Below are positions 13,074 through 58,614 of a stretch of DNA of 64,000 bases, in pieces. The translations under genes and the position numbers were made by a program. Numbering within the stretch: position 1 is the first letter of the stretch; each line of letters opens with the position of its first letter. The stretch lies in IMG/VR virus record IMGVR_UViG_3300035665_000001, positions 186,001-250,000 of that record. One strand, written 5' to 3'. A model generated the notes under the pieces. The model was not told where the DNA came from, did not search any database, and saw only the letters and a program-made list of their open reading frames with translations.

Positions 13074-14204
13074 ATGAAAACTAAAAATTATCATTATGTT
13101 TACAAAATTACAAATCATAATCCAGTAGATTCACGTAAGTTCTATATTGGTGTTAGAACAACGAAAGGGCGATTACCAGAAGATGATATTAATTATATGG
13201 GTTCATCAGATACATTAACCGCTGCAATTAAAACCCAAGGAAAAAAATATTTTTCTAAAGAAATTTTGTCAGTATGGCAATCAAAGGATGATGCATATGC
13301 TGAAGAAATAAGATTACATGAATTGTATGATGTTTGTAGAAACATGGAATATTATAATAATGCTAACCAAACGAGCACTAAATTTTGTACGGATGGTAGG
13401 GTTGTAGTGTTTGATAAGAACACGGGCAAAACAAAAAGTGTAACAAAAGAAGAATTTCAAACTGTTACTGATTATGTTGGTGTTAAAACAGGTATGGTTT
13501 CCGTAATGGATACTACCGATGGAGTATTTAAATCAGTGTCAAAGGAGGAATTTGAAAAATCCGAACATTATATTCATCCTGCAACTGGTAAAGTAACCGT
13601 GATTGATACCACCGATGGTTTAGTTAAACATGTGAACTGTACAGAATATAGAAGTTGTGAAAATTATGTTTCTATCGCTACTGGAACTGTAACGTGTTAT
13701 GATATTAGAGATGGAAAAAACAAACAAGTTTCTAAAGATGAATTTGATAATGCTGATAATTTAATCAGTTGTAATGCTGGAAAAGTTACTGTGCTTGATA
13801 CTCGTGATGGAATTAAGAAATCGGTAACTAAGGTAGAGTTTGATATTACCTCTCATTATGTCGGTGTTAAATCTGGTAGAGTTACCGCTTTCGATATTCG
13901 GGACAAAAAGTTTAAAACTGTTACGATTGAAGAATTTGCAAATGATGATAATTATGTGAAAGGTAATTCCAAAAAAGTTGTTATTTTTGATAATAATGAT
14001 AATGTGGTTTTTGTATCTTATGGCAATTTTGAAACTTTTTGTAAAAAACATAAATTGCCGTGCTTTGTATTTAGAATGTCATATCGTAATAATGGCAGTC
14101 CAATCTATCAAAATTTAAGAGGCGTAACAAAAGCAAAGATATTTAAAAATGGAAACTACAAATATATCGGTTGGTATGCTAAAATTAGTGATGATACAAC
14201 TTAA
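13074..14204 (+). CDS. GIY-YIG (Seg-like) homing endonuclease with six 32-aa repeats
   Basis: YHYVYKITN..KFYIGVR..YMGSS..KEIL..EIRLH..YYN; then six units of G(K/R)V(T/S)xxDxxDGxxKxVxxxEF. Confidence 0.85.
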   Translation: MKTKNYHYVYKITNHNPVDSRKFYIGVRTTKGRLPEDDINYMGSSDTLTAAIKTQGKKYFSKEILSVWQSKDDAYAEEIRLHELYDVCRNMEYYNNANQTSTKFCTDGRVVVFDKNTGKTKSVTKEEFQTVTDYVGVKTGMVSVMDTTDGVFKSVSKEEFEKSEHYIHPATGKVTVIDTTDGLVKHVNCTEYRSCENYVSIATGTVTCYDIRDGKNKQVSKDEFDNADNLISCNAGKVTVLDTRDGIKKSVTKVEFDITSHYVGVKSGRVTAFDIRDKKFKTVTIEEFANDDNYVKGNSKKVVIFDNNDNVVFVSYGNFETFCKKHKLPCFVFRMSYRNNGSPIYQNLRGVTKAKIFKNGNYKYIGWYAKISDDTT

Positions 14205-15511
14205 AAAACAGAAGGGAGAATATCCCATTTATCCATATCGGAGTCAGGATCATAATCATCATCCTCATCATATTCTACAACAGATGAACCATTTTGTGCC
14301 ATTCTGGCGTAGTATTCTCTTTCCTGTTTCTTTGCTTCTTCAATTAATTTTAGTTCTTCCTGTTTTTGTTGTTCTAATCGCAAAGTTTCTTTTTCTACTC
14401 GTTCTTTATATAATTTCGCAGGATCAATTTCTTCTTTATTGGTGTTGATAATTTTTTCATCTTTTTTAGTAATCAACATATTATCAACAGAAAAATCACC
14501 CATCGCGTAGTTTGCGAATTCATTAAGAAGATAATATACCATTAAGAATGAACAGGTGACTCTATCGTCAGTATAACCAGATTTAGCACAATACGCCCCA
14601 CCAGCTGTTCTAATAAATCCATATAATTCCTCAATAAATCTTCCATCTCGAATTACCATTTTGTCGTACTCAACCAAATTTTTAAATTGTAATGCTAGTT
14701 TATTTTTAAGAGTTGGGGTTATGTGTAATCCAGGTTTACCCTTAATATCATAGAAGATAGGCATTTCAAGATTTTCGATTGCCTTTTCAGTTTGGGTTAA
14801 AATTTGAGCTAATCCCTCACCAATACCATTACGTTCAAAGATAATAAGTGCTTCATTTGGTTCATACTGCCATCTTGTTCGCATGTAATCCTGTAACCAT
14901 AATAATTTTTCAAATAGTACTGATGCATCAGCAAATTCATCGACAAAAGAGGCGATTTCATAAACCTTATGTGGTGCTATTTCCCAAATTTGTAAACAAC
15001 TACTATTATTACCACCTGCGGATGGGTCAATAGTTACCACTAACAAACCATCATCGTGCTCCAATTTATCTTTAAAAATATTAAAACCATTAACATCCTC
15101 CTCAAGAATTTCAGGTATTTGGTAAAAATCTAAAATATCTGTAGAAATTAATGAAAGTTCGAAAGTGATGAAAGCACAATTATGGGTTTTTAATGAATTA
15201 GCCAATAAAAAACTGTGCTCATCGTTTTCAACCTCAATAATATCAAACATTTTGGTAAAATTGTGAATTTCATTGATTTCCTCCACCTCACACAAACCCG
15301 TTTCGGTTTTTAAATCAAACCCCACTAATAAATCTTTTGCTTTTATTAACAGGTTATTTGATGTCCAAAATAAATGTTCACCAGAACATTTTACCGAAAT
15401 ATCATTGCTTAATTTTATTTCAAAAAACGAATTATGTTCAGATGATGCTATTCCTGCAAACGCTTTGTAACCTTCAGGAGTTTTTATTTTAAATCTATTA
15501 TTTTTTACCAT
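14201..15511 (-). CDS. terL: Large terminase C-terminal fragment: split-intein C-half (111 aa) plus RNase H-fold nuclease domain
   Basis: IKTPEGYKAFAGI..CSGEHLF..FDIIEVENDEHSFLLANSLKTHN|CAF, then gp17-like TIDPSAGG, IFERNGIGEGL, GYTDDRV; ends in a coiled-coil/acidic tail. Confidence 0.88.
   Translation of the reverse strand: MVKNNRFKIKTPEGYKAFAGIASSEHNSFFEIKLSNDISVKCSGEHLFWTSNNLLIKAKDLLVGFDLKTETGLCEVEEINEIHNFTKMFDIIEVENDEHSFLLANSLKTHNCAFITFELSLISTDILDFYQIPEILEEDVNGFNIFKDKLEHDDGLLVVTIDPSAGGNNSSCLQIWEIAPHKVYEIASFVDEFADASVLFEKLLWLQDYMRTRWQYEPNEALIIFERNGIGEGLAQILTQTEKAIENLEMPIFYDIKGKPGLHITPTLKNKLALQFKNLVEYDKMVIRDGRFIEELYGFIRTAGGAYCAKSGYTDDRVTCSFLMVYYLLNEFANYAMGDFSVDNMLITKKDEKIINTNKEEIDPAKLYKERVEKETLRLEQQKQEELKLIEEAKKQEREYYARMAQNGSSVVEYDEDDDYDPDSDMDKWDILPSVF
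15179..15511 (-). other. Atypically split intein, C-half (TerL intein 2)
   Basis: Contains block B (SGEH), block F and terminal HN followed by +1 Cys; lacks block A. Confidence 0.85.
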
Positions 15512-15615
15512 GAATTTTTTCTCAAATTAATGTAATTAAACTATATTTATGAATTTTTTGTTGAAACAATTACAAAAATAAATAAATATAATAAAATTAT
15601 AATTTGGAGAAAAAA

Positions 15616-16422
15616 ATGACGGTAGTAAACCAGAGTGATATTAAAAGTGGTTCAAAACCTGTTAGGGATTTATTTTCATTACTACCAAAAGACAGAGATT
15701 ATGGTTGGTTGTGTACGCAAACCTATTCAAATGACGATCTTGTCGAAATTTCATATATTGTGAATAATATTGAGAGTCCACATATCAAGAATTTTGGTTT
15801 TTTTAACTTACTGATACAGAGTCAAGCTGGACCATTCAATTCTGCTGTTTTTGCTGTCTATTTAAAAGAGTTAAATGCTGTAGATGTTCTAATTCATTTG
15901 ATCGCAAAAACCCCTAACTTATCAGAAAAAGAAAAAATTGCTTGGTTGGAAAACCCAAATATTATATCTAAAGGTTTTATGACAATGGTTAGATATTTTT
16001 TTGATCATGGTGTTGCCGCACAATGTGGAATTTCTAATACTAAATCACCATATAATGTGATATTTGCAAAAGAAATAATGGTATATGGTTATAGTACAAA
16101 TCATGATCGATTAAAAGACTTTTTATTTGGTTCGTTAAATTCTTTGACTCCTGCTGAATTAGATTCATGGTATCGTGAAACTCTTTTTATGATTTGTGGT
16201 GAGGATAATTATGTAGCAGTTGATGTGTTGGGTGATTATCCAAATACACCCGAAAATTTGTTGGATGACTATTTTTCACATACTCAAAACACTGCGTTGA
16301 AATTGAAATTGGCTTTGCATAAAAATTTCCCAGTAAAAAAAATATATCCTATATGGAAAGAAACTGAAAATACCATATTGTATGATAAGTTACCAGCGTC
16401 AATAAAAAGCTTGATATTCTAA
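15616..16422 (+). CDS. LRV/HEAT-like repeat protein with C-terminal tag
   Basis: AKTPNLSEKE, GDYPNTPENLL, ALHKNFPVKK repeats; GGAG RBS; ends KLPASIKSLIF. Confidence 0.6.
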   Translation: MTVVNQSDIKSGSKPVRDLFSLLPKDRDYGWLCTQTYSNDDLVEISYIVNNIESPHIKNFGFFNLLIQSQAGPFNSAVFAVYLKELNAVDVLIHLIAKTPNLSEKEKIAWLENPNIISKGFMTMVRYFFDHGVAAQCGISNTKSPYNVIFAKEIMVYGYSTNHDRLKDFLFGSLNSLTPAELDSWYRETLFMICGEDNYVAVDVLGDYPNTPENLLDDYFSHTQNTALKLKLALHKNFPVKKIYPIWKETENTILYDKLPASIKSLIF

Positions 16423-16425
16423 GAG

Positions 16426-16459
16426 TGAGTTGGTTGATAGATTGTTTTCAACCAACTCA
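16426..16459. terminator. Inverted repeat between convergent genes
   Basis: TGAGTTGGTTGA / TCAACCAACTCA, 12-bp stem. Confidence 0.65.
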
Positions 16460-16466
16460 TTTGTAA

Positions 16467-16982
16467 TTATACCAACTTACTCAATAGGTAAGTTTTATGT
16501 TTATTATTGTTAAAAACAAACATCACCTCATTTTTTTCTGTATTTTCATACAATTTAAATTTCTTGTAAATTGAAATTAATTGAGTAATTGGTGCAGTCA
16601 TAGTAACCATATTCACTCTTACATTTCTATCATAACAGAACGCTTGTAGGTCAGTAATATTTTTACCAAAACTTCCAAGATAATTGAAATTTTTAAGGTC
16701 GATTGCTTTTTCTGGTGAGGTTCCTAGAGTTTGATCTGTTACGGGAACTAATTTGTTTCGAGTTAATCTGAATGTCCCTTCAAAATCAATTTCTTCGGGA
16801 TTGTCATATACAATCATTGTTTTATCATTAATGCACGTCAAATATTCATTACATGCTGATGTATAAAGATTTGTTTTTTCACGTTGTAAATTTTTAAAAC
16901 TTTTTAACACTTCACGGTTAACATTGTCAATAATATCTAGGTTTAATGCTTCCACAACTATACTCATCGGTAAATTCTCCAT
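16467..16982 (-). CDS. Hypothetical protein
   Basis: ORF 16467-17048 of the track; start adjusted to MENLPM. Confidence 0.55.
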   Translation of the reverse strand: MENLPMSIVVEALNLDIIDNVNREVLKSFKNLQREKTNLYTSACNEYLTCINDKTMIVYDNPEEIDFEGTFRLTRNKLVPVTDQTLGTSPEKAIDLKNFNYLGSFGKNITDLQAFCYDRNVRVNMVTMTAPITQLISIYKKFKLYENTEKNEVMFVFNNNKHKTYLLSKLV

Positions 16983-17065
16983 TTTTAATTTATTTTGAAT
17001 TATTTTACAAAAAAATAAAAATTTAGTATAATTCTTTTGGAATACCAATAAATACGGAGAATTCT

Positions 17066-17827
17066 ATGTTCATATCATGGTTAGAAAAAAAATGTTATCC
17101 AAACCATCCAATATCTTTGACCGCTGAAGAATGGGTTGAATGGGAAAAGGTAGAAAAATCAAAACCAATTTGTAATTTTTGTGTTAATGTAGTTCCTCAA
17201 TGGTGTAAAAAATATATTACTAGACCCCTATCAAATGCACAATATTGGTTTTTATATCGGTTTGTTAAAAAACACAAATATCATTTAATTGATACTGGAT
17301 TGTTACCAGGCTATTATGATGTGGATACTCGTATTTTTCATGGTGTTTTTAATTTGATGAAAGAATTTTGTGAGGATGAACAACCTAGAAATGATTGGAT
17401 GTGGGAATCTGATAAAAATTCTAAAAAATTTGTTCCTGGATTTAATGCAGCGATTGAATCTTTTAAATGGCAAAAAGAATTGGTTTATACCTCGGATGAT
17501 GTCTGGGATATTGAAAATCAACATCTTATTGGTACACCACAACCACAGGCTTTAGTTGCTAAAGAATTAGAAGAAATCTATATTTGGTGGGTGGTAACTA
17601 GACCAAATCGAGAAGATCCATATAAAAAATTTCAGGATTTTTATTTTGAAAATCTTTTGCGAGAAAAAGGTTCCAGTATGTCACTATTATGTGCGAGATC
17701 ACCAGAAGAAGAAGAAAAAAGAGCATTGGTAGTTGCACAACGAGATGAATTAGAAAAGCAGTATAAAGATGAGGATGAAAATATGCTACTTAGATTGATA
17801 AAAATTAGACATTCTTTATGGACATGA
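17066..17827 (+). CDS. Phage hypothetical protein
   Basis: 253-aa Trp-rich ORF; GGAG RBS; TTTACA-17-TATAAT promoter at 17004-17032. Confidence 0.7.
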   Translation: MFISWLEKKCYPNHPISLTAEEWVEWEKVEKSKPICNFCVNVVPQWCKKYITRPLSNAQYWFLYRFVKKHKYHLIDTGLLPGYYDVDTRIFHGVFNLMKEFCEDEQPRNDWMWESDKNSKKFVPGFNAAIESFKWQKELVYTSDDVWDIENQHLIGTPQPQALVAKELEEIYIWWVVTRPNREDPYKKFQDFYFENLLREKGSSMSLLCARSPEEEEKRALVVAQRDELEKQYKDEDENMLLRLIKIRHSLWT

Positions 17828-17924
17828 TGTTATTTGGGATTGTTATGTGAAATATTATTTTAGTTGTCGACATTCAATAACATATAAATATTCTGTTTTT
17901 AAAAAATTAATCGAGATTACGAAA

Positions 17925-18365
17925 ATGAAAAAAATATTATTACTGGCAATTTTATCATCGATACACCAAAATGCTCATGCTTTAAAAGTTATAGATAATG
18001 TAGTTGTCCCTATGGGTGCTGGAATTGCAGGAGCAATGATTTATCAGTCAATTAGTAGTGATGATAATCGGAGAAATAACAATCAGTATAACTCAGATTA
18101 TAATCGAAATACTTATCAATATAATAATACCTACCAATACAACAATAGTTATGGTCGAACCAATGATTATCAGTATAATAGAAACCACTACGATAACCAA
18201 TATGATTATAACAGTGATTACAGTAGAAGTAGAGATAATGAAAGAGAATATGAAGAACGACAAATTGAAAGAGATATTATTAGAGAAGAAAAAAGAAAAT
18301 TGCGATACTGTAAATATTTGTTAAATACACAACAACTTAATATGTATCGTTATAAATGTCAGTAG
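17925..18365 (+). CDS. Secreted protein with Asn/Tyr/Gln-rich low-complexity domain
   Basis: Signal peptide MKKILLLAILSSIHQNAHA, glycine-zipper-like GAGIAGAM, NNQYNSDYNRNTYQYNNTYQYNN tract; TATAAATA at 17883-17890. Confidence 0.6.
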   Translation: MKKILLLAILSSIHQNAHALKVIDNVVVPMGAGIAGAMIYQSISSDDNRRNNNQYNSDYNRNTYQYNNTYQYNNSYGRTNDYQYNRNHYDNQYDYNSDYSRSRDNEREYEERQIERDIIREEKRKLRYCKYLLNTQQLNMYRYKCQ

Positions 18366-18647
18366 TTGAAACACGAATCAGATATTGTGTTAATTTTTTT
18401 GGAGTTAATTATGAGTAAATTTATTTTACCGTGTTGTATTGGTTATATATTGATTAATTTGAATCATGTGATTTTTGGATATTCAGTTCATGATGATGTA
18501 ATACAGTTAATCAGTCATATGTTTTTACTGTTTTCGGAAATTTTTGTTATTGAATCCCTGATAAAATGGTTTAATAGACATGAAAATGTTGTATAATAAT
18601 ATTGAAAGTTACAACCATTAACACTAATTTTTTGAGTAGATAACACA

Positions 18648-19625: not shown

Positions 19626-19656
19626 AAAAATTATTTTGTGTACTAAAGGATAAAAA

Positions 19657-44009: not shown

Positions 44010-44333
44010 ATGAAAGATATTAATGAGTGGGAGATTTTAACTCCAGAGGGATGGCGTGATTTTTCGGGAATTATCCAATTAGATAAGAAAGTTATCACTA
44101 TTGAATTTGATAATGGTAAACAGTTAACAGGTAGTGAAACACATCGAATTTTTTCTAAAATTGGAATACAAGAATTTAACACTTTAATGGTTGGTGATGA
44201 AATCAAAACCAATGATGGTTGGACTGTGGTAACTAAAATTTCAGATGTAAAACAAACTCAGAAAGTATATGATTTGGTAGAAGTAAAATCAGCTAACCAT
44301 CAATATTATACCAATGGTTTTGTTTCAAAAAAT
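44010..44333 (+). other. Atypically split intein C-half (TerL intein 1); partner N-half not in window
   Basis: Blocks B (SETH), F and G ending SKN, with +1 Cys. Confidence 0.82.
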
Positions 44334-44798
44334 TGTGATGAGATTGCGTTTATTCCCAACAGAATTCAGGAAGAATTTATGTCTGGCACAACACCGGCTC
44401 TTTCTGCTACAAAAGGAAAAATGTTAATTACCTCAACGCCCAATGGTTCGAGAGATTTATTTGCGAAACTTTGGTTTGGATCCGGTATGACATGGGATAA
44501 AAAACAATATACATACGTCAGAAAAAATGAACCAAAAAACCTTTTTAGTCCATTATTTGTACCTTTTTGGATTGACCCAGAAAAAAACACTGATGAATGG
44601 ATTCACAGAGAAAAGATGACTCTCGATAGCCCAATAGCATGGAAAATAGAGTTTGAATGTATGTATCCAGATACGTTGATTGATGTATATGATGAAAAAA
44701 CTAAAAATTATCAAACAATAACTATAGAAGATATGTATCGAATGATACTTCGAGATGAAATTGAGAATAAAGTTATTATTGATGAATCTGATAATTAG
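44010..44798 (+). CDS. terL: Large terminase middle fragment: IntC(108 aa) - ATPase Walker B/motif C region - IntN(46 aa)
   Basis: ILTPEGWRDFSGI..SETH..YDL..YTNGFVSKN|CDEIAFIP..LITSTPNG..IEFE|CMYPDTLIDV..ITIEDMY. Confidence 0.9.
   Translation: MKDINEWEILTPEGWRDFSGIIQLDKKVITIEFDNGKQLTGSETHRIFSKIGIQEFNTLMVGDEIKTNDGWTVVTKISDVKQTQKVYDLVEVKSANHQYYTNGFVSKNCDEIAFIPNRIQEEFMSGTTPALSATKGKMLITSTPNGSRDLFAKLWFGSGMTWDKKQYTYVRKNEPKNLFSPLFVPFWIDPEKNTDEWIHREKMTLDSPIAWKIEFECMYPDTLIDVYDEKTKNYQTITIEDMYRMILRDEIENKVIIDESDN
44658..44798 (+). other. Atypically split intein N-half (TerL intein 2), 46 aa
   Basis: CMYPDTLIDV block A plus ITIEDMY helix, then stop. Confidence 0.85.
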
Positions 44799-44806: not shown

Positions 44807-45970
44807 ATGTTGTTGAAAGAAAAAATGATATTGATAGAATTCATAATATTCGCAAAAAACAATATTAATAATATCGCTGAAAATCCAACAGATACGTTCA
44901 TCGATAAAGTGGTTGAAATTTACCATCGCAAGAAAAATGTTGAATTTAAAAACCCACTAGCAAATGAATTTCCTAGAGCACCTAATACACTTGAATATTG
45001 GTTACACCGTGGATGGAATGAAAAAGAAGCAGAGAAAAAAAGGTGTGAAAAAATTCTCGCTAGTAGTTGCTCATTACAAGCTTTAATTGCTAAACATGGT
45101 GAAGAAAAAGGGTATCATTTGTTCACCGAAATCAATACTAAAAAATCAAATACTTTGGATGGTTTCATTAGAAGACACGGTGATGAAATAGGAAAAAAAT
45201 TGTACGCTGCATATACCCTAAAAATGTCCACACAAAATACTTTAGTTGGGATGATTGAAACTTATGGTGAAATTGAGGGTAATGAAAGATATAACACTAT
45301 GATTTCTGGTAAGATACATAACTTAGAAAGTGTTATTAAGCGATATGGGGAAGAAGAAGGTAAAAAACGATACACTGCTAGTAATTTAAAAAGAAGTAAA
45401 TCACACAGTTATGTGGGGTTCGTTGAAAGGTTTGGTTCTTACGCTGACCAAAAATGGGAGGAATTATCAAAAAATCGATCATATAGAACAACAGTAGATT
45501 ATTATATTGAAAAATATGGGGATGATTTAGGGAGAAAAAAACATACCGATTGGTTTAAATCATCGATTGGTGGTGATTTTAGTCAAAGTTTTTCAAAAAC
45601 ATCTAAAATGTTATTTGAAAGTTTAAAAAATAATGAATTTGCTCAATTTGGTTGTAATGAAGCTTTAATTGAATTAACTACAGATGAACAATCAGTTTTA
45701 AATAGGAAATTTATTCGCCCCGATTTTTTACTTGATAACAAAATAATTGAATTTTACGGAACCTATTGGCATTGTCATGAATCCATGTTTGCTGCAGATC
45801 AGATACATCCACAGTTTAATAAGACAGCAACAGATATACGAAACTACGATTGTAAGAAAAATGAGGTGTTGAAATTGAAAGGGTTTGATGTTTTGGTTAT
45901 TTGGGAACATAATTATTATGCTAACAAAGAAGGTATTATTGCACAGTGTAATGACTTCTTAAATCAATAA
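44807..45970 (+). CDS. Free-standing homing endonuclease with C-terminal Vsr-like PD-(D/E)xK domain
   Basis: Repeated K(H/Y)GxExGxxxY units; RPDF..IIEFYGTYWH..GFDVLVIWE; paralog of 62689-63924. Confidence 0.75.
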   Translation: MLLKEKMILIEFIIFAKNNINNIAENPTDTFIDKVVEIYHRKKNVEFKNPLANEFPRAPNTLEYWLHRGWNEKEAEKKRCEKILASSCSLQALIAKHGEEKGYHLFTEINTKKSNTLDGFIRRHGDEIGKKLYAAYTLKMSTQNTLVGMIETYGEIEGNERYNTMISGKIHNLESVIKRYGEEEGKKRYTASNLKRSKSHSYVGFVERFGSYADQKWEELSKNRSYRTTVDYYIEKYGDDLGRKKHTDWFKSSIGGDFSQSFSKTSKMLFESLKNNEFAQFGCNEALIELTTDEQSVLNRKFIRPDFLLDNKIIEFYGTYWHCHESMFAADQIHPQFNKTATDIRNYDCKKNEVLKLKGFDVLVIWEHNYYANKEGIIAQCNDFLNQ

Positions 45971-46592: not shown

Positions 46593-48056
46593 TTGAGAAC
46601 CATATTAAAATTTATATTGATTACACTACTTTTGTTATTACCCGTAGTATTGATAACAAATCTAGGTGTGATACAACCTTCATACTATCATATTATTATA
46701 AATCAAATTTACAATACGGTAATTATAGTTTTGTCTGTATGTTTTATTACTACTATTGTTGGTGTAACACTATCATGGGTATTTGCAATTTACGATTTCC
46801 CCTTTAAAAATAGTTTGGAAAAAATAATTATTTTAGGTATGGTTTTTCCAAGTTATGTATTGGCATTTTTTTATTCCGAAATGTTTAATATCTTTGGTTC
46901 AATTGCGTTAATTGGTACTTTAGTTGTTACCACATTACCTTATGTTTTTATGATGGTAACTACCAGTATCCGAATACAATCCCAACGTATGGTTGAATCG
47001 GCATTGATGTTTGGTAAAGATAAGAGATGGATAAAAGGTAAATTGATATTGCCATTAATTTTTCCAACAATCGTTTTATCAACATTATTGGTTATGGGAG
47101 ATACATTTTCTGAATTTGGTGCCACTTATTTTTATGGTGTTAATACTGTGATGACTGGAATTTACGAAATTTGGTTTGGTTTGAATGAATCTATACAAGG
47201 GATACGATTGTCAGCATGGTTGTTAACAGTTGTTATAATGGTATATTTGGTTATTAATGTTTTGAAAAAAGTATTTGTTGATAAATCCGATAATTTTATA
47301 AACAGTCGTGAATTTAAAGGTATAGTGGTCGAGAATATAGGTATTAAAGGTTGGTTTATAACTTTTTTAATATTCTTACTAACCATTATTACTTTTTTTA
47401 TACCTTGTTTCGTGTTATTAACATGGGTAATTGAAAGTTATAACAAAACCGATTGGTTTAAAGTTTTAGCAACCACAATTAATTCGGGAATCTTAGCATC
47501 AATAATATCTTTAAGTGTATTATGTGTTACCACTATAATTTTATATTTGTTTAAGCATCGGCTAGTGGCAATAATGACAATTTGTAATACGTTGTATTCA
47601 ATACCAGGTATTGTTTTGGCAATAACGACAATCTTTATATCTACACATCTTCCATTGAGTTTTACACCTGTTATATTTTTGTATGTTTTAATAGTCAAGT
47701 ATATTGCAATTGGTGTTGATAATATTAGTGCTCCAATTCAAAAAATTCATAAACAACATTATCACTCCTCAAAATTGTTAGGTCATAGTTCCTTATGGTA
47801 TATTAAAAATGTTCAGTTTCCATTAGGTTTTCAAATATATTTGGTTGCAGGATTATTAGTTTGGATCGATGTCATTCGGGAATTAGTAATAGGGTTGACT
47901 ATTAGACCACAGGGATTAAATTTATTAAGTATCGAAATTTTTAGATTTATGGATTTAGAACAATTATCTATGAGTGGTCCTTGGATTTTATCTATGGTTA
48001 TTTTAACAATGGTTCCAATTTATTTTATAAATATGGTTTTAAAGCAAAATAGGTAA
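46593..48056 (+). CDS. fbpB: Fe3+ ABC transporter permease (FbpB/FutB-like)
   Basis: Multi-TM with two duplicated halves; ESALMFG..LILPLIFP EAA-like motif, SEFGAT. Confidence 0.85.
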   Translation: MRTILKFILITLLLLLPVVLITNLGVIQPSYYHIIINQIYNTVIIVLSVCFITTIVGVTLSWVFAIYDFPFKNSLEKIIILGMVFPSYVLAFFYSEMFNIFGSIALIGTLVVTTLPYVFMMVTTSIRIQSQRMVESALMFGKDKRWIKGKLILPLIFPTIVLSTLLVMGDTFSEFGATYFYGVNTVMTGIYEIWFGLNESIQGIRLSAWLLTVVIMVYLVINVLKKVFVDKSDNFINSREFKGIVVENIGIKGWFITFLIFLLTIITFFIPCFVLLTWVIESYNKTDWFKVLATTINSGILASIISLSVLCVTTIILYLFKHRLVAIMTICNTLYSIPGIVLAITTIFISTHLPLSFTPVIFLYVLIVKYIAIGVDNISAPIQKIHKQHYHSSKLLGHSSLWYIKNVQFPLGFQIYLVAGLLVWIDVIRELVIGLTIRPQGLNLLSIEIFRFMDLEQLSMSGPWILSMVILTMVPIYFINMVLKQNR

Positions 48057-48062
48057 ATCTGT

Positions 48063-48968
48063 ATGTTTGATGTAAAAAATCTAAACCTAATAATAGATGA
48101 TGTTGATATTCTACACAATATAAACTTTGATATTCATAATGGTGAAATACTTTCTATTATTGGACCGAGTGGTTGTGGTAAATCATCTATTTTAAAATCT
48201 ATAGCTGGAATTTATAAACATACTACAGGGGCATTAATATTAGATGGTGAAAATATCGCGGACAAACCTATTAATCTCAGAAATGTCAACTTAGTTTTTC
48301 AAGATTTCCCTTTGTTTCCACATATGACTACTATACAAAATATGCTTGTTGCCTGTGATAATAACCGAGTTATTGATATAGTCCTCGATGAAATGGGTAT
48401 CAAACATTTAAAATTTAAATATCCTCATGAAATGAGTGGTGGTGAACAACAACGAGTTGCATTAGCTCGTGCGATAGTGTATAAACCCAAATTATTATTA
48501 TTGGACGAACCATTTTCAAATATTGATGTGCTAACCACAAAAGTATTGAGACATAAAGTATTTAATTTATTGAAGCAATTTAATATTACTACTCTAATGG
48601 TTACACATGATTTGGATGATGTTTTTGAAATGAGTGAAAGATGTATCGTTATGAAAAATTCGAGTATTGTACAGTTTGATACTTTTGATAATTTATACAA
48701 TTATCCAGTTGACGAATATGTTTCAACTTTATTCGGTAATGTTGTTTCTTATGCAGGTAAAAATTATAGACCAGAAAATATATTAATTATTGCAGATTAT
48801 TCACCTAATTCCGTTAAAACTGTAATTAAAAATGTAAAATTTAAATCACATTATAATGAAATAACTTTAGAATTGGATAATAAACAAGATATCATTGTTT
48901 TTGATTATTATCGTAAAAAGTATAAAATTAATGAGATTATGTATTTGAATTTTAATAACCCATTATAG
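48063..48968 (+). CDS. fbpC: Fe3+ ABC transporter ATPase (FbpC/FutC-like)
   Basis: GPSGCGKS Walker A, VFQDFPLFPH Q-loop, MSGGEQQR signature, LLLDEPF Walker B, VTHD. Confidence 0.9.
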   Translation: MFDVKNLNLIIDDVDILHNINFDIHNGEILSIIGPSGCGKSSILKSIAGIYKHTTGALILDGENIADKPINLRNVNLVFQDFPLFPHMTTIQNMLVACDNNRVIDIVLDEMGIKHLKFKYPHEMSGGEQQRVALARAIVYKPKLLLLDEPFSNIDVLTTKVLRHKVFNLLKQFNITTLMVTHDLDDVFEMSERCIVMKNSSIVQFDTFDNLYNYPVDEYVSTLFGNVVSYAGKNYRPENILIIADYSPNSVKTVIKNVKFKSHYNEITLELDNKQDIIVFDYYRKKYKINEIMYLNFNNPL

Positions 48969-48980
48969 GAAAAACATATT

Positions 48981-49976
48981 ATGAAGAAAAATTTATGGTT
49001 GCTACTTTTTTTGTTTGGTATTTATAATGCATCTGCTTCAGATAAAAAGAGTATTCATGTTATTACTGATAGAAGTGATGCACACTTATTAGATTTAACA
49101 TCAAAATTTGAAAAAGAAAGTGGTGTTGAAGTGAATTTAACATTCGTTAAAAATGGCATTATTGAAAAAGTAAAAAGTTATGATTATGATGCAATTATCA
49201 GTAAGGATAGTAGTGAATTAGTTGCGGCGAAAGATGAGGGGTTGTTACATACTATTGATGATAGTGTGCTAGACAACATTCCAACCAATTTTAAGGATAT
49301 TGATAAACAATGGTTTAATATGAGCTATAGAATTAGATCATTTCATATGAAGAAAGGTTTAACAGATGCACCAACATCGTATGAGGATTTAGCAAAACCC
49401 CAGTATAAAAATAGAATTTGTATTAGAAGTTTAACTCACAATTACAATTTAGAAATGTATGGAACTATGTTATCATATATGGGTGAGGAGAAATTTACTA
49501 ACTGGTTTAAAGGATTTAAATCGAATATAGTTAAAGATTCGGCAGCAGGAAATGATAGAACCCAGGTTAAAGGTGTGTATGATGGTGAATGTGACATAGC
49601 AGTTGCAAATTCATATTATCGTGGATTGATGTTACAAGATCCGGAGCAAAAAAAATGGGCAGAAGCAACATATTTATACATACCTAACCAAGAAAACGGT
49701 AGAGGAGCGATAGCATTGTATTCTGCAGTAGGTTCGTTATCGGATAATACCAATAATAAAACATTTTTGAATTATTTAATTTCAAAAGAAACGCAACAAC
49801 AGTTATCATATGATAATTATGAATATCCAATTAAAACTGAAAATACATCACCTACTGTTAAACAATATGGTGATGCACAGAAATTGGACTATAAATCAAT
49901 CAAATTATTTGATAATGTTCAAAACGATTTATTTGAATTGAGAAAAAAAGCTTATTTAATTATTAAAGCCAACTAA
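48981..49976 (+). CDS. fbpA: Fe3+ ABC transporter periplasmic binding protein (FbpA/FutA-like)
   Basis: Signal peptide; SYEDLAKPQYKNRICIRS..HNYN, GNDRTQ, CDIAVANSYY, YEYP. Confidence 0.85.
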   Translation: MKKNLWLLLFLFGIYNASASDKKSIHVITDRSDAHLLDLTSKFEKESGVEVNLTFVKNGIIEKVKSYDYDAIISKDSSELVAAKDEGLLHTIDDSVLDNIPTNFKDIDKQWFNMSYRIRSFHMKKGLTDAPTSYEDLAKPQYKNRICIRSLTHNYNLEMYGTMLSYMGEEKFTNWFKGFKSNIVKDSAAGNDRTQVKGVYDGECDIAVANSYYRGLMLQDPEQKKWAEATYLYIPNQENGRGAIALYSAVGSLSDNTNNKTFLNYLISKETQQQLSYDNYEYPIKTENTSPTVKQYGDAQKLDYKSIKLFDNVQNDLFELRKKAYLIIKAN

Positions 49977-51990: not shown

Positions 51991-52048
51991 AAAATATTTT
52001 TTGAGTAAATAAAGGAATGTTGAAATACTTTATAAAGGATAGTGTTAT

Positions 52049-53608: not shown

Positions 53609-53627
53609 CAAAGAAGGAAATCAAACA

Positions 53628-54155
53628 ATGAAATTAGGTAAATTAAGTGAAAGTTTTACAAATCCAGATACATTTTTTCTGAAATTGTATCAGACTGAAG
53701 ATTTGTCAAATTGTACAACATTAAATGAAACCAAAGAAACTATATCTACCATATTTGCAGCCGCAGATACTTATGCAGTTAATAATAAGTTTAAACACAA
53801 ATATTTTGATTTGGCACATACTCCCCTGTGGGAAAATTTAGAAATTGAAAAACACCATTTTATTTTAAAAGGTTTTGATGCGTTTATTGCGATCGATTTA
53901 ACTGAAAATTTGCATGACATTAGACCATTTGTATTGGTTCAACACAATAATGTTGAAGATTTGGAATATGGGCATCGAATTGAAATCACTGAAGAATTTA
54001 TAAATTCTATGGTTGTATTTCAGAAAGAACTTTTTTTAGAAGCATTACATAGATTTGAAAGTGAAACTGTGGAAACATTAAAGGCTGTTTGGAAGGTTGA
54101 ACAGCAAAGAATAGATAAATGGGTTAAAACTTGTAAAATTGATTTGAATTCGTAA
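53628..54155 (+). CDS. Hypothetical protein
   Basis: 175-aa ORF; N-terminus MKLGKLSES. Confidence 0.6.
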   Translation: MKLGKLSESFTNPDTFFLKLYQTEDLSNCTTLNETKETISTIFAAADTYAVNNKFKHKYFDLAHTPLWENLEIEKHHFILKGFDAFIAIDLTENLHDIRPFVLVQHNNVEDLEYGHRIEITEEFINSMVVFQKELFLEALHRFESETVETLKAVWKVEQQRIDKWVKTCKIDLNS

Positions 54156-54170
54156 ATCAGTGTAGTATAA

Positions 54171-54485
54171 TTGGTATTTAATTATACAAATAGGATAAAC
54201 ATGGAAATCTTGGATATTTCAACAGTTCGTGAAAAAACTATCAATTCACAACCCATTGAAAAAGAATATGATACTATGATTTCTGACTGGAATAATATCA
54301 TTGATTGGACATCTAATAATCACTTTGGATATACTAAAATTTGGTTTTATGAGCATCAACTCGAAGAATTAGAAACTGATATTTTACATGTTTCTAATTT
54401 GTATAGGGTTGGTGGTTATAAAGTGAGTGACATCGGGTTTGATAAATACTTCTCTTATTATTTTGTAGAGATATCGTGGGCATGA
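54171..54485 (+). CDS. Hypothetical protein
   Basis: About 100-aa ORF. Confidence 0.5.
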   Translation: MVFNYTNRINMEILDISTVREKTINSQPIEKEYDTMISDWNNIIDWTSNNHFGYTKIWFYEHQLEELETDILHVSNLYRVGGYKVSDIGFDKYFSYYFVEISWA

Positions 54486-54952
54486 CAATATTTCTTGATA
54501 AAATCAAAGATTTGTTAACTGTACAGAAAAACATTATAATTTCTGATATTACCCCAGTTATACATGTGGCCCATATAACTAACAATGGGTATCTACATTT
54601 GGGAATTGAATTTCATGAGGAGTTACAGGTAAGAATGTTATATCATGGTTTTAAACCAAATAATGTGTGGCAGTTATCACTTACGGGGTTATTTGACGAA
54701 CATGAAAACATAATCACTTATATATCGGAACATTATTTAACCATACAGGTAACAAATAATCGGTGGTATCAATTAGATTTATTCACCGATAATGAGGTAA
54801 GTGATTACAGTTTAACTATCGAAAGTATTGAATTCTCGAAAGTAGTTAAGTCACTATTACAGTTATCAGAAGAAAAAACAATCCATTTAAGAGTTAGAAT
54901 TGGTGAGTCAAATTGGTCAGAAATAGTGAAATTTGATGTTTCAAAAATTTAG
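54476..54952 (+). CDS. Hypothetical protein
   Basis: About 155-aa ORF. Confidence 0.5.
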   Translation: MGMTIFLDKIKDLLTVQKNIIISDITPVIHVAHITNNGYLHLGIEFHEELQVRMLYHGFKPNNVWQLSLTGLFDEHENIITYISEHYLTIQVTNNRWYQLDLFTDNEVSDYSLTIESIEFSKVVKSLLQLSEEKTIHLRVRIGESNWSEIVKFDVSKI

Positions 54953-55176
54953 GAACCAAATTATCTACCTAAGAGGAGATTAAACTCAATGAATCATAAT
55001 CGTGTTTTGATGGTGTATGAACAATCTAAGAAAAAATTACTACCTCACAATATCACTAAAATATGGGAATATATTTCTCATCACATTCCAACTAAAAAAA
55101 TACCAGTTAAAACTTTTTTATCACCAAAAAATATTGTAAAATTGTTATCATCAACAATAAAATAGGATATTAAATT

Positions 55177-55470
55177 ATGGCTAAGAAAGACACAACCACA
55201 TCTACATCTAAAAGTGCCACACCTAAAAAAAATGATTTATTCACCAAAATGAGAAAAAACATTCTTAAAAAGAATGAAGATGCAATGTTAGATTTAACGG
55301 AACCTACTGTTTGGGCATCATCTGGAAATTATGTATTAAATCATATTTTGAGTGGTAGATTTCATAGAGGTTATCCTTCTGGAAGAATTGTACAAATTTT
55401 TGGTGATTCTGGGTGTTTATTGCCACATGAAAAAATAAAAGTGTATGAATTCAAATCAAATATTGTATGA
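55177..55470 (+). CDS. recA: RecA/UvsX fragment 1: N-terminus to mid-Walker A plus 18-aa split-intein N-half
   Basis: SSGNYVLNHILSG..GYPSGRIVQIFGDSG|CLLPHEKIKVYEFKSNIV*; IntN 55414-55467. Confidence 0.85.
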   Translation: MAKKDTTTSTSKSATPKKNDLFTKMRKNILKKNEDAMLDLTEPTVWASSGNYVLNHILSGRFHRGYPSGRIVQIFGDSGCLLPHEKIKVYEFKSNIV

Positions 55471-55533
55471 AATACTTGTTAAATTATTATAAAACTAACA
55501 ATCAAAAAATAAAAAACTTTATTGGAGAACAAA

Positions 55534-56856
55534 ATGATTGAAAACAATGTTAGAGAATTAACTGATAAAGAAAAATTACTGGAATTAAAAGAATGGTATT
55601 CCTCTGATGAATTATCAAAATCCCTTGATGTTACTGAAGAAATGCTTGGTAATTTTTTAAATGATAAAAGTTCTTTTACATTAACAAATTCTGAGAAATT
55701 GAACGATTTTTTTAATAACCATGTTCATGAAAATTCAAAATTTGAAATGATTAAAAATGTTTATGGTTTGTGGGAAACTGATGAAAAACAATTTATGGTT
55801 GATACTCCTGATGGGTTTCAATTTGTTAGTGAATTTATTCATAAAGATTCAAGAAGTTGCTTTGACTTAAGAACCGATAATTTTCATATTGAATGTTCGG
55901 GTGACCATTTGATTGAAACTGATAAAGGTTGGGTGAAAACTGAAGATATTGTAGTTGGTTCAAAAGTGTTAACCCGTGTTGGTTTTGAGGAAGTTAAATC
56001 AAATGCACAACTTAGTGATAGTGATGTTTACGATATGACTGTTGAACATGATAATCATCGATATTGGGGTGGTGCCGGTATTTCATCACATAATTCTGGT
56101 AAATCTTTTCTTATGGCTAAAGCGATTGTTGAGGCTCAAAAAGAAGGTTATATGGTGGCAGTATTAGATTCGGAACAAGCGGTTTCACAGGATTATTTGA
56201 AAAAAATTGGGGTTGATTTAGACCCATCAATGTTAATGACTGTGCAGGTACAAACAGTTGAACAAACTCAAGATATGCTTCTAGAAGTTTTGGAAGGTGT
56301 TAAGGAAGAACAAGAAGCTTTAGGAAATACCAAAGAACTAAAATTATTACTGATTGTTGATTCCATTGGTATGCTTTCATCTGGAAAAGCACTAGCAAAT
56401 GCTGAAGCTGGACATCACGCGGCTGATATGGGTACTAAAGCAAAAGCATTAACCAATATGTTCAACCAAATTGTACAAAAAGTTGGTATTACTGAAACTG
56501 TTTGTTTAGTAACTAATCATGGAGCATTAGAAGTTGGAGTTATGTTCCCACAACTCAAACCAAAAGGTGGACAATGTTTAGTAGCAGGTACAAAAGTACA
56601 AACTGATAAAGGTTATAAAAATATTGAAGAAATCCAAGTTGGTGATATGGTGAGAACACACTTGAACCAAATTAAACCTGTTGAAAAATTATTTAGTTTC
56701 GATAATCTTGATATTCTTAATTTTGAATTAGAAACAGGACAAAACATTAAAATGTCGAAGGATCATAAAATGTTAGTTTTGCGAAATGGTGAAAAATTGT
56801 GGTTGGAAGCTCAATTTATAACTACTTATGATTCATTGTTAGCACTTGATGTTTAA
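55534..56856 (+). CDS. recA: RecA/UvsX fragment 2: IntC(187 aa) - ATPase core - IntN(93 aa)
   Basis: GGAG RBS; ..CSGDHL..YDMTV..ISSHN|SGKS..LDSE..IVDSIG..VTNH..KGGQ|CLVAGTKV..SKDHK. Confidence 0.9.
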   Translation: MIENNVRELTDKEKLLELKEWYSSDELSKSLDVTEEMLGNFLNDKSSFTLTNSEKLNDFFNNHVHENSKFEMIKNVYGLWETDEKQFMVDTPDGFQFVSEFIHKDSRSCFDLRTDNFHIECSGDHLIETDKGWVKTEDIVVGSKVLTRVGFEEVKSNAQLSDSDVYDMTVEHDNHRYWGGAGISSHNSGKSFLMAKAIVEAQKEGYMVAVLDSEQAVSQDYLKKIGVDLDPSMLMTVQVQTVEQTQDMLLEVLEGVKEEQEALGNTKELKLLLIVDSIGMLSSGKALANAEAGHHAADMGTKAKALTNMFNQIVQKVGITETVCLVTNHGALEVGVMFPQLKPKGGQCLVAGTKVQTDKGYKNIEEIQVGDMVRTHLNQIKPVEKLFSFDNLDILNFELETGQNIKMSKDHKMLVLRNGEKLWLEAQFITTYDSLLALDV

Positions 56857-56870
56857 TAATTAAATGGATT

Positions 56871-56901
56871 GGGGTGGATATTGAAATCCACCCCATTTTT
56901 T
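56871..56901 (+). terminator. Intrinsic terminator after RecA fragment 2
   Basis: GGGGTGGA / TCCACCCC stem followed by a T run. Confidence 0.75.
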
Positions 56902-57397
56902 TATTGTACAGCCCCATATCTAGAACCAGTAACCAACCATGTAATTGAACTGTTTCCACTTATTGATGCACCACCTGAACCACCACCTGAACCCATATCG
57001 TTGTATGATGTTTTACCACCGCCACCACCACAGATTGCACCTGCTTGACCTGTAAATGCTGAACCGCCTGTACCTGCTGTCCTACCATATGAGTTAGAAC
57101 CATTAGTTCCGTATGTCGCACCTATCCAGTTTTCAGTACCACTTCCCCATGGTGAAGCACCACCAGCACCACCTTGAGTTTGTGTACCACTGTTACCATT
57201 ACCACCAGCGGCATAACCAAAACTTGTTTCCGTTCCACCTGATGCAGGTGAATTATTCGAATCGGACTGTCTAGCAGTTGTTTCTGCAGCTAAATTAGTA
57301 GTTAAAGTTGCATCTGCAGCTTGTCTCGCAGTTACCTCATTTGCAATATTGGTAGCAACAACACTACCGATTTTTTTTTAAATATTGAATCGACCAT
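56901..57397 (-). pseudogene. Frameshifted Gly-rich tail-fibre-like ORF (about 165 aa if shifted -1 at A9)
   Basis: AGGAG RBS, then MVDSIFKKK / IGSVVATNIANEVTARQAADATLTTNLAAETTARQ..GGAGGAS..CGGGGG..GSGGGSGG..AVQ*; T9 run at 57371-57379; GC-richer than flanks; absent from the ORF track. Confidence 0.6.
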
Positions 57398-57477
57398 TTG
57401 TATCTCCTATTTAATAACTATTAAAAATCGGTATGATTTTTTGAATGAATCCACTTGTGTGGAATATGTTATATTTA

Positions 57478-57789
57478 TCAAATAGTATCATTTTGCGGAA
57501 CTAAATTTCGTTCTAAAACACCCCATTTATGTAATCTTCTTAGTTCTGCAGAATGATCACGGCAGCAGGTTTTATTAAATCCAGCACCAATTGACACAAA
57601 TTTTGTTACTTTATTACATTTTGGATGTTGACATATATTGCTGTCTGGATGATAAAATAAATAAATTTTTGCATCTGTCGGTGTACCTTCAAAAAGTTTG
57701 GAATCCTCACATTCATTTAACCATAACCCAACGTTATGTTTGAATCCTTTTTCTTTGTTTTTTATAAAATATGTTTCAAAATTATTCAT
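57478..57789 (-). CDS. Truncated homing-endonuclease-like N-terminal fragment (Cys motif)
   Basis: CQHPKCNKVTKFVSIGAGFNKTCC resembles the Zn-binding N-domains of phage free-standing endonucleases; no nuclease domain. Confidence 0.4.
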   Translation of the reverse strand: MNNFETYFIKNKEKGFKHNVGLWLNECEDSKLFEGTPTDAKIYLFYHPDSNICQHPKCNKVTKFVSIGAGFNKTCCRDHSAELRRLHKWGVLERNLVPQNDTI

Positions 57790-57945
57790 TTGTTTTTTTC
57801 TCCTGAAAATAATATAGTATTATACATTAAGTGACAATTCATCTTATTATCGAGTGATAGGCAAAAAATAAATTTTTAAGATTTTACTTTTATCTCATTT
57901 GATTGTAAAATAATAGTTAATAACCATTCACTAAAGGAGTATTTT

Positions 57946-58614
57946 ATGAACTCAAATGAGTTTTTAGTCGATTCAAATTATAAACCAGTTAAGATTAAAT
58001 CTATTACCCCTGTGGCAATAGAAAAAACTTATGATTTTCAAGTTGCTGACGATCATAGTTTTTTATTAGAAAATAATATAATTTCAAGTAATTGTATGGA
58101 ATTTGTACCATCAATTTCTTTGCGTGTAACTAAAGGTAAGATTAAACCCACTGATTTGGCAGAATTAGAATATTTGTATGATGGTGGAATACCAAAACAT
58201 TTGGGTGCTTTAGGGATTGTATCGAGAATTGAATTGTATAAATCCCGATTTACCCGACCTTTTAGAAAGGTACAATTGATGATTCCATACGATTTTGGAT
58301 TACCTGAATATGCGGGATTATTTGATTATCTCAAAGATAATGGTATAATTATTGAAAATGGTAGAAAAGGTTATTATAATTGTACTGAGGTACAATTTGA
58401 AAAAGATTTTACTAGAAAAGATTTTATTAAAGGTGGTTGGGCTGATTTAATTATGGAACATTTATTAGCTGAGGAAACCAAAGGTAGAATTTATGATTTT
58501 ATTATGAAATCTAGTGATGATGATGCCCGAGAAAAAGAACAAGGATTAGATTCAATTGATGACTCTTACATTGAAGATGATGATATGGATGAATCGGAAT
58601 TTAATGTTGAATAA
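57946..58614 (+). CDS. recA: RecA/UvsX fragment 3: IntC(49 aa) plus C-terminal domain with acidic tail
   Basis: AAGGAG RBS; VKIKSI..TYDFQVADDHSFLLENNIISSN|CMEFVPSISL..KSRFTRPFR. Confidence 0.88.
   Translation: MNSNEFLVDSNYKPVKIKSITPVAIEKTYDFQVADDHSFLLENNIISSNCMEFVPSISLRVTKGKIKPTDLAELEYLYDGGIPKHLGALGIVSRIELYKSRFTRPFRKVQLMIPYDFGLPEYAGLFDYLKDNGIIIENGRKGYYNCTEVQFEKDFTRKDFIKGGWADLIMEHLLAEETKGRIYDFIMKSSDDDAREKEQGLDSIDDSYIEDDDMDESEFNVE

Follow-up and report, generated by a model that had tools for sequence, protein, structure and literature searches.

Essential proteins of a T4-like jumbo phage appear to be encoded as dispersed fragments and rebuilt by tandem protein trans-splicing

The stretch of DNA analyzed here (64,000 nucleotides (nt), called the window throughout) covers positions 186,001 to 250,000 of virus record IMGVR_UViG_3300035665_000001, that is G000:C1:186001-250000, and coordinates marked "genome" below are those of G000:C1. 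The source is a single linear record of 306,333 bp with 30% G+C, ~85% complete according to CheckV, and its terminase, Portal_T4 portal and UvsX place this freshwater giant or jumbo phage among the distant T4-like phages. In the window lie gene pieces for two of its proteins, the large terminase subunit (TerL) and the RecA-like recombinase UvsX, in which segments of the host protein (exteins) are joined to the N-terminal half (IntN) or the C-terminal half (IntC) of split inteins. Near-identical DNA is present in lake-water and freshwater metagenomes from many separate studies, and in six runs at least 60% of the sampled words are present; two of these runs may be where the DNA came from.

TerL, which would be ~602 amino acids (aa) long once joined, is divided among four polypeptides by three split inteins with short N halves (short-N inteins a, b and c). 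Intein a interrupts the P-loop and intein b Walker B, and intein c precedes the nuclease domain. The pieces are dispersed over 60 kb and both strands, their order along the genome being piece 2 (minus), piece 1 (minus), piece 4 (minus) and piece 3 (plus). Junction E values below are from hidden Markov models (HMMs), and ORF stands for open reading frame.

Genome 184960-185298, minus strand: TerL piece 1, an 81-aa extein ending ..SRQMSK followed by the 32-aa IntN-a.
Genome 169361-170074 (ORF 169361-170113), minus strand: TerL piece 2, 16 kb before the window, found with TerL and intein profiles.
Window 44010-44798, plus strand: TerL piece 3, 262 aa, made up of IntC-b, an extein and IntN-c.
Window 44010..44333, plus strand: IntC-b, 108 aa, ending SKN with Cys at +1 (junction HMM E 1e-11).
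Window 44334..44657, plus strand: TerL piece 3 extein, 108 aa of the ATPase part from Walker B (..CDE..) onwards, matching positions 522-641 of the TerL family phrog_36964.
Window 44658..44798 (with stop), plus strand: IntN-c, 46 aa, starting with Cys, predicted beta-beta-alpha, detected by the N-junction HMM.
Window 14201-15511, minus strand: TerL piece 4, 436 aa, made up of IntC-c and the nuclease-domain extein.
Window 15179..15511, minus strand: IntC-c, 111 aa, ending THN with Cys at +1 and with the block B His (junction HMM E 1.3e-10).
Window 14201..15178 (with stop), minus strand: TerL piece 4 extein, 325 aa, the nuclease or C-terminal part, matching the terminase family phrog_24361.

Piece 1 was found by way of the TerL of Campylobacter phage CP20, whose P-loop is interrupted at the same site by a contiguous intein. 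Piece 2 consists of IntC-a (117 aa, ending SHN with Thr at +1), an 88-aa extein that runs from just past the Walker A lysine up to Walker B, and the 33-aa IntN-b. The extein of piece 4 matches T4-like gp17 terminases (tblastn), aligns to residues 474-683 of the CP20 TerL (phmmer) and is 59-62% identical, over its full length, to a piece in a 290-kb relative (G001). A search of the ~85%-complete record with terminase families returned no TerL beyond these pieces, PF03237 giving a sub-threshold match only and PF17289 no match. As an observation on the side, the T4 late-promoter word TATAAATA stands 36 nt upstream of piece 3 and 70 nt upstream of piece 1, and piece 4 has CATAAATA. The word is under-represented, with 57 occurrences against ~136 expected in 612 kb of strand sequence, and could be a marker of the phage's late genes.

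UvsX (~412 aa joined) is divided among three polypeptides by two split inteins of different classes.

Window 55177-55470, plus strand: UvsX piece 1, an extein followed by IntN-1.
Window 55177..55413, plus strand: UvsX piece 1 extein, 79 aa, ending in the P-loop (..GDSG) and matching phrog_97 positions 1-84.
Window 55414..55470 (with stop), plus strand: UvsX IntN-1, 18 aa, starting with Cys (N-junction HMM E 1e-5).
Window 55471..55533: intercistronic spacer with three in-frame stops (TGA, TAA, TAA), a GGAG and the start of piece 2, without an endonuclease gene.
Window 55534-56856, plus strand (a TTG start at 55522 is the alternative; the database gene call is 440 aa): UvsX piece 2, made up of IntC-1, the RecA core and IntN-2.
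Window 55534..56094, plus strand: UvsX IntC-1, 187 aa from ATG 55534 (191 aa from TTG 55522), ending SHN with Ser at +1.
Window 56095..56574, plus strand: UvsX piece 2 extein, 160 aa of RecA core from ..SGKS onwards (Pfam RecA E 2.8e-11; phrog_97 positions 83-239).
Window 56575..56856 (with stop), plus strand: UvsX IntN-2, 93 aa, of the canonical split type, starting with Cys (Pfam Hint_2 E 1.2e-9; N-junction HMMs).
Window 56870..56895, plus strand: terminator-like hairpin after UvsX piece 2, with a 10-bp stem, 6 GC pairs and a T run.
Window 57946-58614, plus strand: UvsX piece 3, IntC-2 followed by an extein.
Window 57946..58092, plus strand: UvsX IntC-2, 49 aa, ending SSN with Cys at +1 (junction HMM E 2.5e-12).
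Window 58093..58614 (with stop), plus strand: UvsX piece 3 extein, 173 aa, matching phrog_97 positions 363-494.

Read-through translation puts UvsX pieces 1 and 2 in the same frame, separated by a 51-nt gap with three stops. The gap is crossed, with 0 differences, by a metagenome contig of independent origin, so that the split is no sequencing slip, and the UvsX region as a whole is base-for-base identical in independent lake metagenome contigs. Over the ~85%-complete record phrog_97 matches the three UvsX pieces only, with no intact second UvsX.

Each on its own, the extein pieces map seamlessly onto intein-free homologues. Aligned singly, TerL pieces 2 and 3 fall on residues 82-170 and 170-318 of the intein-free P0055, and the three UvsX pieces cover residues 3-66, 66-226 and 228-382 of the intein-free P0121 (the extein of UvsX piece 3 also maps to residues 224-380 of P0128). 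The homologues P0052 and P0055 have the TerL exteins joined precisely where junction b, or junctions a and b, would lie.

The residues needed for splicing are present on both sides. IntN-b, IntN-c, UvsX IntN-1 and UvsX IntN-2 all begin with Cys1. The C-terminal junctions in the window read SKN|C, THN|C, SHN|S and SSN|C and are recognized by the block F/G HMM at E 1e-10 to 1e-13, and the block B His motifs, taken from the translations, are SETH (b), SGEH (c), SGDH (UvsX-1) and SKDH (UvsX-2). Conservation among homologues is high: Cys1 is kept in 74/74 sequences for b and in 54/56 for c (the other two being truncated), the terminal Asn is kept in 74/74 piece-2-type and 55/56 piece-3-type sequences, and Asn108, Cys109, His45, Cys217 and Thr222 are invariant in the alignment of piece-3 homologues. 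The four split-intein systems that the original prediction had placed in the window are thus all there, with catalytic residues in place by junction HMMs and motifs. The lengths it gave for three of them are borne out (46 + 111 aa for what it called TerL-2, 18 + 187 aa for RecA-1, counted from ATG 55534, and 93 + 49 aa for RecA-2), and it was right that the IntC and the IntN of 44010-44798 are both of the short-N type. For its TerL-1, the C half does end SKN; the N half proved to be the 33-aa tail of TerL piece 2, outside the window.

The inteins also fall into described classes. In the S1 class the split follows strand beta-2, leaving an IntN of ~15-16 aa, and in S2 it follows helix alpha-1; the published S2-type TerL split inteins (AceL, GOS and Cat) have an IntN of 25-37 aa and an IntC of 104-122 aa that includes block B. 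Canonical split inteins are divided at the endonuclease insertion site, with an IntN of 88-130 aa and an IntC of 33-54 aa. The TerL inteins are of S2 type, with IntN halves of 32 (a), 33 (b) and 46 aa (c) and IntC halves of 117, 108 and 111 aa, the 46-aa IntN-c exceeding the published range through an acidic tail; AlphaFold2 (AF2) models of IntN-b and IntN-c are beta-beta-alpha. UvsX-1, with its 18-aa IntN-1 and a match to VidaL (6vgv), is of S1 type, and UvsX-2 (93 + 49 aa, Hint_2, and a weak match to gp41-1, 6qaz, E 0.013) is canonical. All three TerL C halves match CatC (6dsl_B) in sequence, IntC-b at E 3.9e-7, IntC-a at 5.6e-5 and IntC-c at 4.2e-4. The AF2 model of IntC-b (core pLDDT 71-93) superposes on 6dsl_B with Z 13.0 and a root-mean-square deviation of 1.6 over 101 aa at 34% identity, and it matches many inteins at Z 10-13 over ~104 aa, so that the model has the HINT horseshoe fold; the other halves were compared by sequence. 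Furthermore, a complex is predicted between IntN-b and IntC-b, halves encoded 60 kb apart, with an ipSAE of 0.61, where the highest of 3 controls came to 0.02; this mark is reached by 51/78 solved complexes and by 2/108 mismatched pairs, and the runs agreed in at least 80% of contacts with a partner pLDDT of at least 65.

We favor the reading, to which we give a probability of roughly 0.8, that essential proteins of this T4-like jumbo phage are encoded as fragments and rebuilt by tandem protein trans-splicing. Each IntN/IntC pair would dock non-covalently and so complete the HINT fold, the two exteins would then be ligated and the intein would leave.

The rest of the genome widens the picture. 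The C-terminal splice-junction HMM finds 12 junctions at E<1e-9, the next-best ORF scoring E 0.6, a gap that sets the intein signal far above chance. The inventory comes to 12 inteins, of which 8 are split pairs with both halves present, 2 are contiguous and 2 are represented by orphan pieces with an IntC. By sequence class, five short-N split pairs and at least three complete canonical pairs would operate in one genome. The count of four in "one genome segment" from which we started, real as those four are, was therefore too low, and two of the TerL pieces lie outside the window. Outside it, two canonical split inteins divide the large subunit of RNR into three pieces. An AAA ATPase (genome G000:C1:1113-5035, minus strand) is interrupted in the second of its P-loops (..GIGK|C) by a 29 + 139 aa short-N split intein, its halves being adjacent and ~260 nt apart; G001 has this gene in one piece and without an intein (1056 aa). 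The T4-type portal (Portal_T4; genome G000:C1:63427-66624) has two contiguous inteins ~15 residues apart, the second with an HNH domain, and that of G001 is intein-free at 499 aa. Finally, a topoisomerase II piece (genome 117459-118694) and a piece of no assigned family (genome 159022-159591, minus strand) each start with an IntC half. We considered the latter as a helicase and rejected this, as no family supports it.

Relatives speak to both the age and the origin of the arrangement. The piece-3-type fragment (IntC-b, extein, IntN-c) recurs in more than 55 homologue clusters of the same length at 55-67% identity, and the piece-2-type fragment (IntC-a, extein, IntN-b) gave 645 matches, with 73 homologue clusters in a set of 74 sequences. 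For the UvsX middle fragment there are 12 double-ended homologue clusters, in which Asn, the +1 residue and Cys1 do not vary, and overall the double-ended fragments are 55-78% identical to homologues from many studies. A query with a single protein recovered no close relative among viral contigs, and a query with an alignment did. The states of the inteins in relatives are as follows.

TerL intein a: absent, contiguous or split.
TerL intein b: absent or split.
UvsX inteins 1 and 2: neither in 28 clusters, intein 2 only in 13, intein 1 only in 6, both in 12.
UvsX intein 1: contiguous in 6 clusters, where it opens with the same 18 residues as IntN-1.

As every intein is absent, contiguous or split among relatives, each was acquired independently, and this comparison shows that these inteins are selfish elements gained one by one. 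The contiguous form of UvsX intein 1 (145-202 aa in close relatives) aligns across the break in the present copy, so that the split arose inside a loop without an endonuclease gene. In G001, RNR, the AAA ATPase and the portal are free of inteins and TerL pieces 1 and 2 are fused; inteins b and c are still split, with TerL pieces 3 and 4 82 kb apart, and the topoisomerase halves lie 117 kb apart. Some of the inteins thus broke in place and some pieces moved apart, and homing-endonuclease genes adjoin several of the pieces.

Four fragments in this genome carry the IntC and the IntN of different inteins, namely TerL pieces 2 and 3, UvsX piece 2 and RNR piece 2. The two middle fragments of this kind that had been noticed in the window are real and conserved with their catalytic residues, and they make up half of the set. 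Such double-ended fragments have to escape both self-cyclisation and exon skipping. The genomes strongly imply that orthogonality works in vivo: because the arrangement is old, widespread and found in a viable phage, and because the families searched gave no second TerL or UvsX match in the ~85%-complete record, fidelity in the cell should be good enough. The short-N IntC halves are only 25-31% identical pairwise and the intein set as a whole 25-44%; among the N halves, a and b share 12/27 residues (44%), b and c 9/27, and a and c 7/29. There is also a pattern of charge.

IntN-b, positions 7-17: mean charge +1.55 (n=74).
IntC-b, first strand: mean charge -1.68 (n=56).
IntN-c, positions 7-17: mean charge -3.73 (n=56).
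IntC-c, first strand: charge +4 in this phage and +3 in G001 (n=2).

Intein b would therefore pair a basic IntN with an acidic IntC, and c an acidic IntN with a basic IntC, and the predicted IntN-b/IntC-b complex puts the charge-bearing segments in contact. Since IntC-b and IntN-c, the two halves on piece 3, are both acidic, self-cyclisation of that piece should be disfavored. Fidelity probably stems from low mutual identity, different split architectures and the opposite charge patterns of b and c. In a 24 x 24 test most unrelated split inteins were orthogonal, cross-talk clustering in short-peptide splits, and divergence alone usually yields orthogonality (Pinto 2020, PMC7090010). Given that the set was built from independently invading and already divergent inteins, orthogonality may simply have been inherited, and the charge swap between b and c fits either history or selection. 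A bolder proposal, which we hold only tentatively and regard as somewhat doubtful, is that partner choice among the short-N inteins is charge-coded (basic/acidic for b, acidic/basic for c, near-neutral for a) and that selection against cyclisation and exon skipping has given the code its form. Were this true, the clade would be a natural orthogonal kit, with five short-N and at least three canonical pairs and four-fragment tandem ligation in one cell.

A number of points weigh against tandem trans-splicing as we have set it out. We infer splicing, its yields and the cross-reactions all from sequence. The penultimate His is replaced by Lys in intein b (SKN) and by Ser in UvsX-2 (SSN); in the piece-3 alignment this residue is Lys in 5/56 and His in 45/56. 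The IntN-b/IntC-b prediction would not discriminate which member of the family binds, and as the Cat complex has already been solved, its score reflects family likeness and is no proof of binding for the present copy. The IntN partners of the topoisomerase II piece and of the family-less piece were not found by motif search, N-junction HMMs, PF03796 or PF00204, and the G001 topoisomerase N piece has no tblastn match in the 306-kb record; both partners probably lie in the missing 15% of the genome. RNA-library contigs fall within UvsX pieces 2 and 3, which is no proof of transcription. With regard to fidelity, the charge analysis of IntC-c rests on two sequences, the N halves of the GOS and AceL TerL inteins are interchangeable, and piece 2 joins the acidic strand of IntC-a with IntN-b, which is basic and has 44% identity to IntN-a.

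This last combination makes the a/b pair on TerL piece 2 the most likely leak in the set, and leakage there is plausible. Taken further, it leads to the alternative that the set as a whole is leaky, with appreciable cross-splicing or self-cyclisation, chiefly between IntC-a and IntN-b on piece 2, and with circular or exon-skipped by-products that are tolerated or used. The shared residues of IntN-a and IntN-b and the charges of piece 2 fit such a scenario, as do the reports of cross-talk, which concern mainly atypical short-peptide splits and the GOS and AceL TerL halves. The AF2 models give the IntN-b tail of piece 2 a pLDDT of 71-84 versus 51-63 for the IntN-c tail of piece 3. This contrast, however, is no evidence of docking, as the models come without a contact map and from alignments of different depth (48 versus 25 sequences). 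Moreover, the IntC halves are only distantly alike, and both halves are catalytically intact in 74/74 piece-2-type sequences, which fits ill with efficient suicide of an essential protein. We consider a set leaky to this extent unlikely.

It is much less probable still that the fragments work non-covalently through docked halves without ligation, or that some of the inteins are splicing-dead. There is precedent for the former in a split RNR, the NrdA of phage Aeh1 divided by a homing endonuclease, which is reported to assemble without splicing (PMC3045599), and two of the present inteins have a penultimate residue other than His. Nevertheless, every half retains its Cys1 or its block B His, terminal Asn and +1 Cys, Ser or Thr, and these are invariant or nearly so in relatives; we see no reason for keeping them other than that the chemistry is used. 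An intein of 140-200 aa retained in the P-loop or at Walker B would, in addition, block the ATPase site. The least credible alternative of all, that we are looking at pseudogenes in decay, or at an assembly artefact, with the real genes in another place, can draw on the linear and ~85%-complete state of the record, a limit on trans-splicing as well, and on a frameshifted ORF between UvsX pieces 2 and 3, but has against it the long open frames with 55-78% identity to fragments of the same length from many studies, the identical local sequence in independent lake metagenomes, dispersal also in G001, in an NCBI metagenome contig and in the cultured phage SCTP-2, and the lack of a second TerL or UvsX match in the record.

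Trans-splicing thus remains our preferred explanation, and the types of intein involved (Cat/AceL/GOS-TerL, VidaL and canonical) are already known. A split intein in a gp17 terminase with a 122-aa C half has been known since 2009 (Dassa et al. 2009). The TerL inteins of the present phage are like AceL, GOS and Cat in their T4-like TerL host, the short IntN and the long IntC with block B, Cys1, the +1 Cys (in b and c) and their match to 6dsl in sequence and fold. They differ in that three inteins interrupt one TerL, giving four fragments dispersed over 60 kb and two strands; the present copies are only ~34% identical to CatC, b has Lys for the penultimate His and a has Thr at +1. UvsX-1 resembles VidaL (6vgv) in its short IntN (18 versus 16 aa), its Cys1 and the match of the IntC core, residues 77-194 of IntC-1 aligning to VidaL residues 28-145 at E 1.2e-15, but its HINT core is preceded by ~70 aa of additional helical sequence. 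As a side observation, this insert at the split site (window 55534-55750, the first ~70 residues) carries ..LLELKEWYS.., common to the contiguous relatives, and is missing from a 145-aa mini version (P0099); it may be the remnant of a DNA-binding module.

There is precedent for genes fractured by split inteins in phage. In the model of Dassa et al. (2009) two adjacent halves lie on one strand, separated by a gene for an endonuclease. The present phage shares with those genes the phage origin, the terminase and RNR hosts, canonical split inteins together with an atypical one, and free-standing GIY-YIG and Vsr-like endonucleases adjoining the pieces. The arrangement, however, is another one at each of TerL c, TerL b, UvsX-1 and UvsX-2. 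In the case of TerL c an endonuclease gene does follow IntN-c, but IntC-c is 29 kb off and on the other strand. The halves of TerL b are 60 kb apart, UvsX-1 has a 51-nt gap without a gene and UvsX-2 a gap of 1.09 kb with two minus-strand ORFs, neither recognizable as an endonuclease, and there are three or four pieces where the model has two halves.

Tandem trans-splicing itself has been engineered with the gp41-1, gp41-8, NrdJ-1 and IMPDH-1 set (Pinto 2020, PMC7090010; Humberg 2025, PMC12707363). These constructs likewise have three or more segments, at least two orthogonal inteins and middle segments bearing both an IntC and an IntN. They are laboratory assemblies of inteins from different organisms, whereas the phage set is natural, serves essential genes in one cytoplasm and includes several short-N inteins, a class that is scarce and prone to cross-talk in the engineered toolbox.

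The nearest natural parallel is Salicola phage SCTP-2 (MF360958.1; cultured, 440 kb, hypersaline), which has a multi-split and dispersed TerL like that of the present phage. Its gene 267 ("terminase large subunit", 297 aa) consists of IntC-a, extein and IntN-b, as piece 2 does, and IntC-b opens a partner ORF ~38 kb off on the opposite strand. The UvsX of SCTP-2 is interrupted at the same two sites, by inteins that are both contiguous where those of the present phage are split. SCTP-2 differs further in lacking the intein c split, in having a contiguous intein at another TerL site and in being only ~40% identical to the present phage. Its IntC-b (L051/L053, 216-218 kb, minus strand) ends ..SQ, with Gln in place of the Asn of the present phage, and may belong to the inteins with a C-terminal Gln; as a further observation, a contiguous intein ending GSN|T lies in the same ORF. 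We found no paper on the multi-split TerL of SCTP-2 and, in the literature, no account of dispersed fragments that are naturally trans-spliced in tandem. What is new here is the natural four- and three-fragment tandem arrangement with its dispersed genes, how broadly it occurs, and a candidate code for specificity.

With regard to engineering, the assembly of three or more segments needs split inteins that are mutually blind, and few are of the short-N type, in which the N half can be made chemically. A phage that runs three short-N inteins on one essential polypeptide would offer candidate tools and a testable charge-swap rule. With regard to evolution, gene pieces that have drifted tens of kilobases apart are a step past the fractured-gene model. 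A question that follows is how the phage reliably makes an essential late protein when the four genes for it are transcribed separately.

Two of the genes that adjoin TerL pieces in the window encode nucleases.

Window 13074..14204, plus strand: GIY-YIG (SegE-like) free-standing homing endonuclease (PF19835 E 1.2e-7; phrog_314 "homing endonuclease" E 6e-18).
Window 44807..45970, plus strand: free-standing nuclease, a putative homing endonuclease, with a C-terminal domain of the DUF559/Vsr superfamily and NUMOD3-like repeats.

The first sits tail-to-tail with TerL piece 4. A paralogue of it (genome 168170-169348, plus strand; 41% identity) stands tail-to-tail with TerL piece 2, and both carry long repeated "TV.D.RDG..K.V" modules, which hints that the endonuclease and a TerL piece moved together. 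The second has weak Pfam matches to MTES_1575 and DUF559, a match to the endonuclease family phrog_13076 and Atlas neighbors with DUF559, MTES_1575 and NUMOD3; a search of PDB sequences with it gave chance matches only. It is absent from this position in a relative, an NCBI metagenome contig (L046), in which piece 3 directly abuts the permease of the same ABC transporter as in the present phage.

Rfam and tRNA scans of the window gave no matches, and sigma-70-like promoters are not enriched around UvsX (16 versus 20 in shuffles). The first ORF in the 1.09-kb gap between UvsX pieces 2 and 3 (window 56900-57400, minus strand) is Gly-rich and tail-fibre-like; its start (MVDSIFKK..) is out of frame through an A9 run at window 57371-57379, and an intact 772-aa ORF at genome 181213-183528 begins with this N-terminus too. 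Two independent metagenome contigs have the A9 run unchanged, so that it is either a real pseudogene or a slippage site. The second ORF (window 57478-57789, minus strand), Cys-rich and 103 aa long, has no Pfam or PHROGs family match and occupies the place where a homing endonuclease would be expected.

At the very start of the record (genome G000:C1:1-110) there is a perfect 9-nt tandem repeat (TGTCCTTGT), and the assembly may have ended there because of the repeat. 3' of TerL piece 3 the phage encodes a complete ABC importer (window 46593-49976, plus strand), comprising a permease of 487 aa, an ATPase of 301 aa and an SBP_bac_6-type binding protein of 331 aa, which has the look of an auxiliary uptake system; in L046, too, piece 3 is followed by these three genes.

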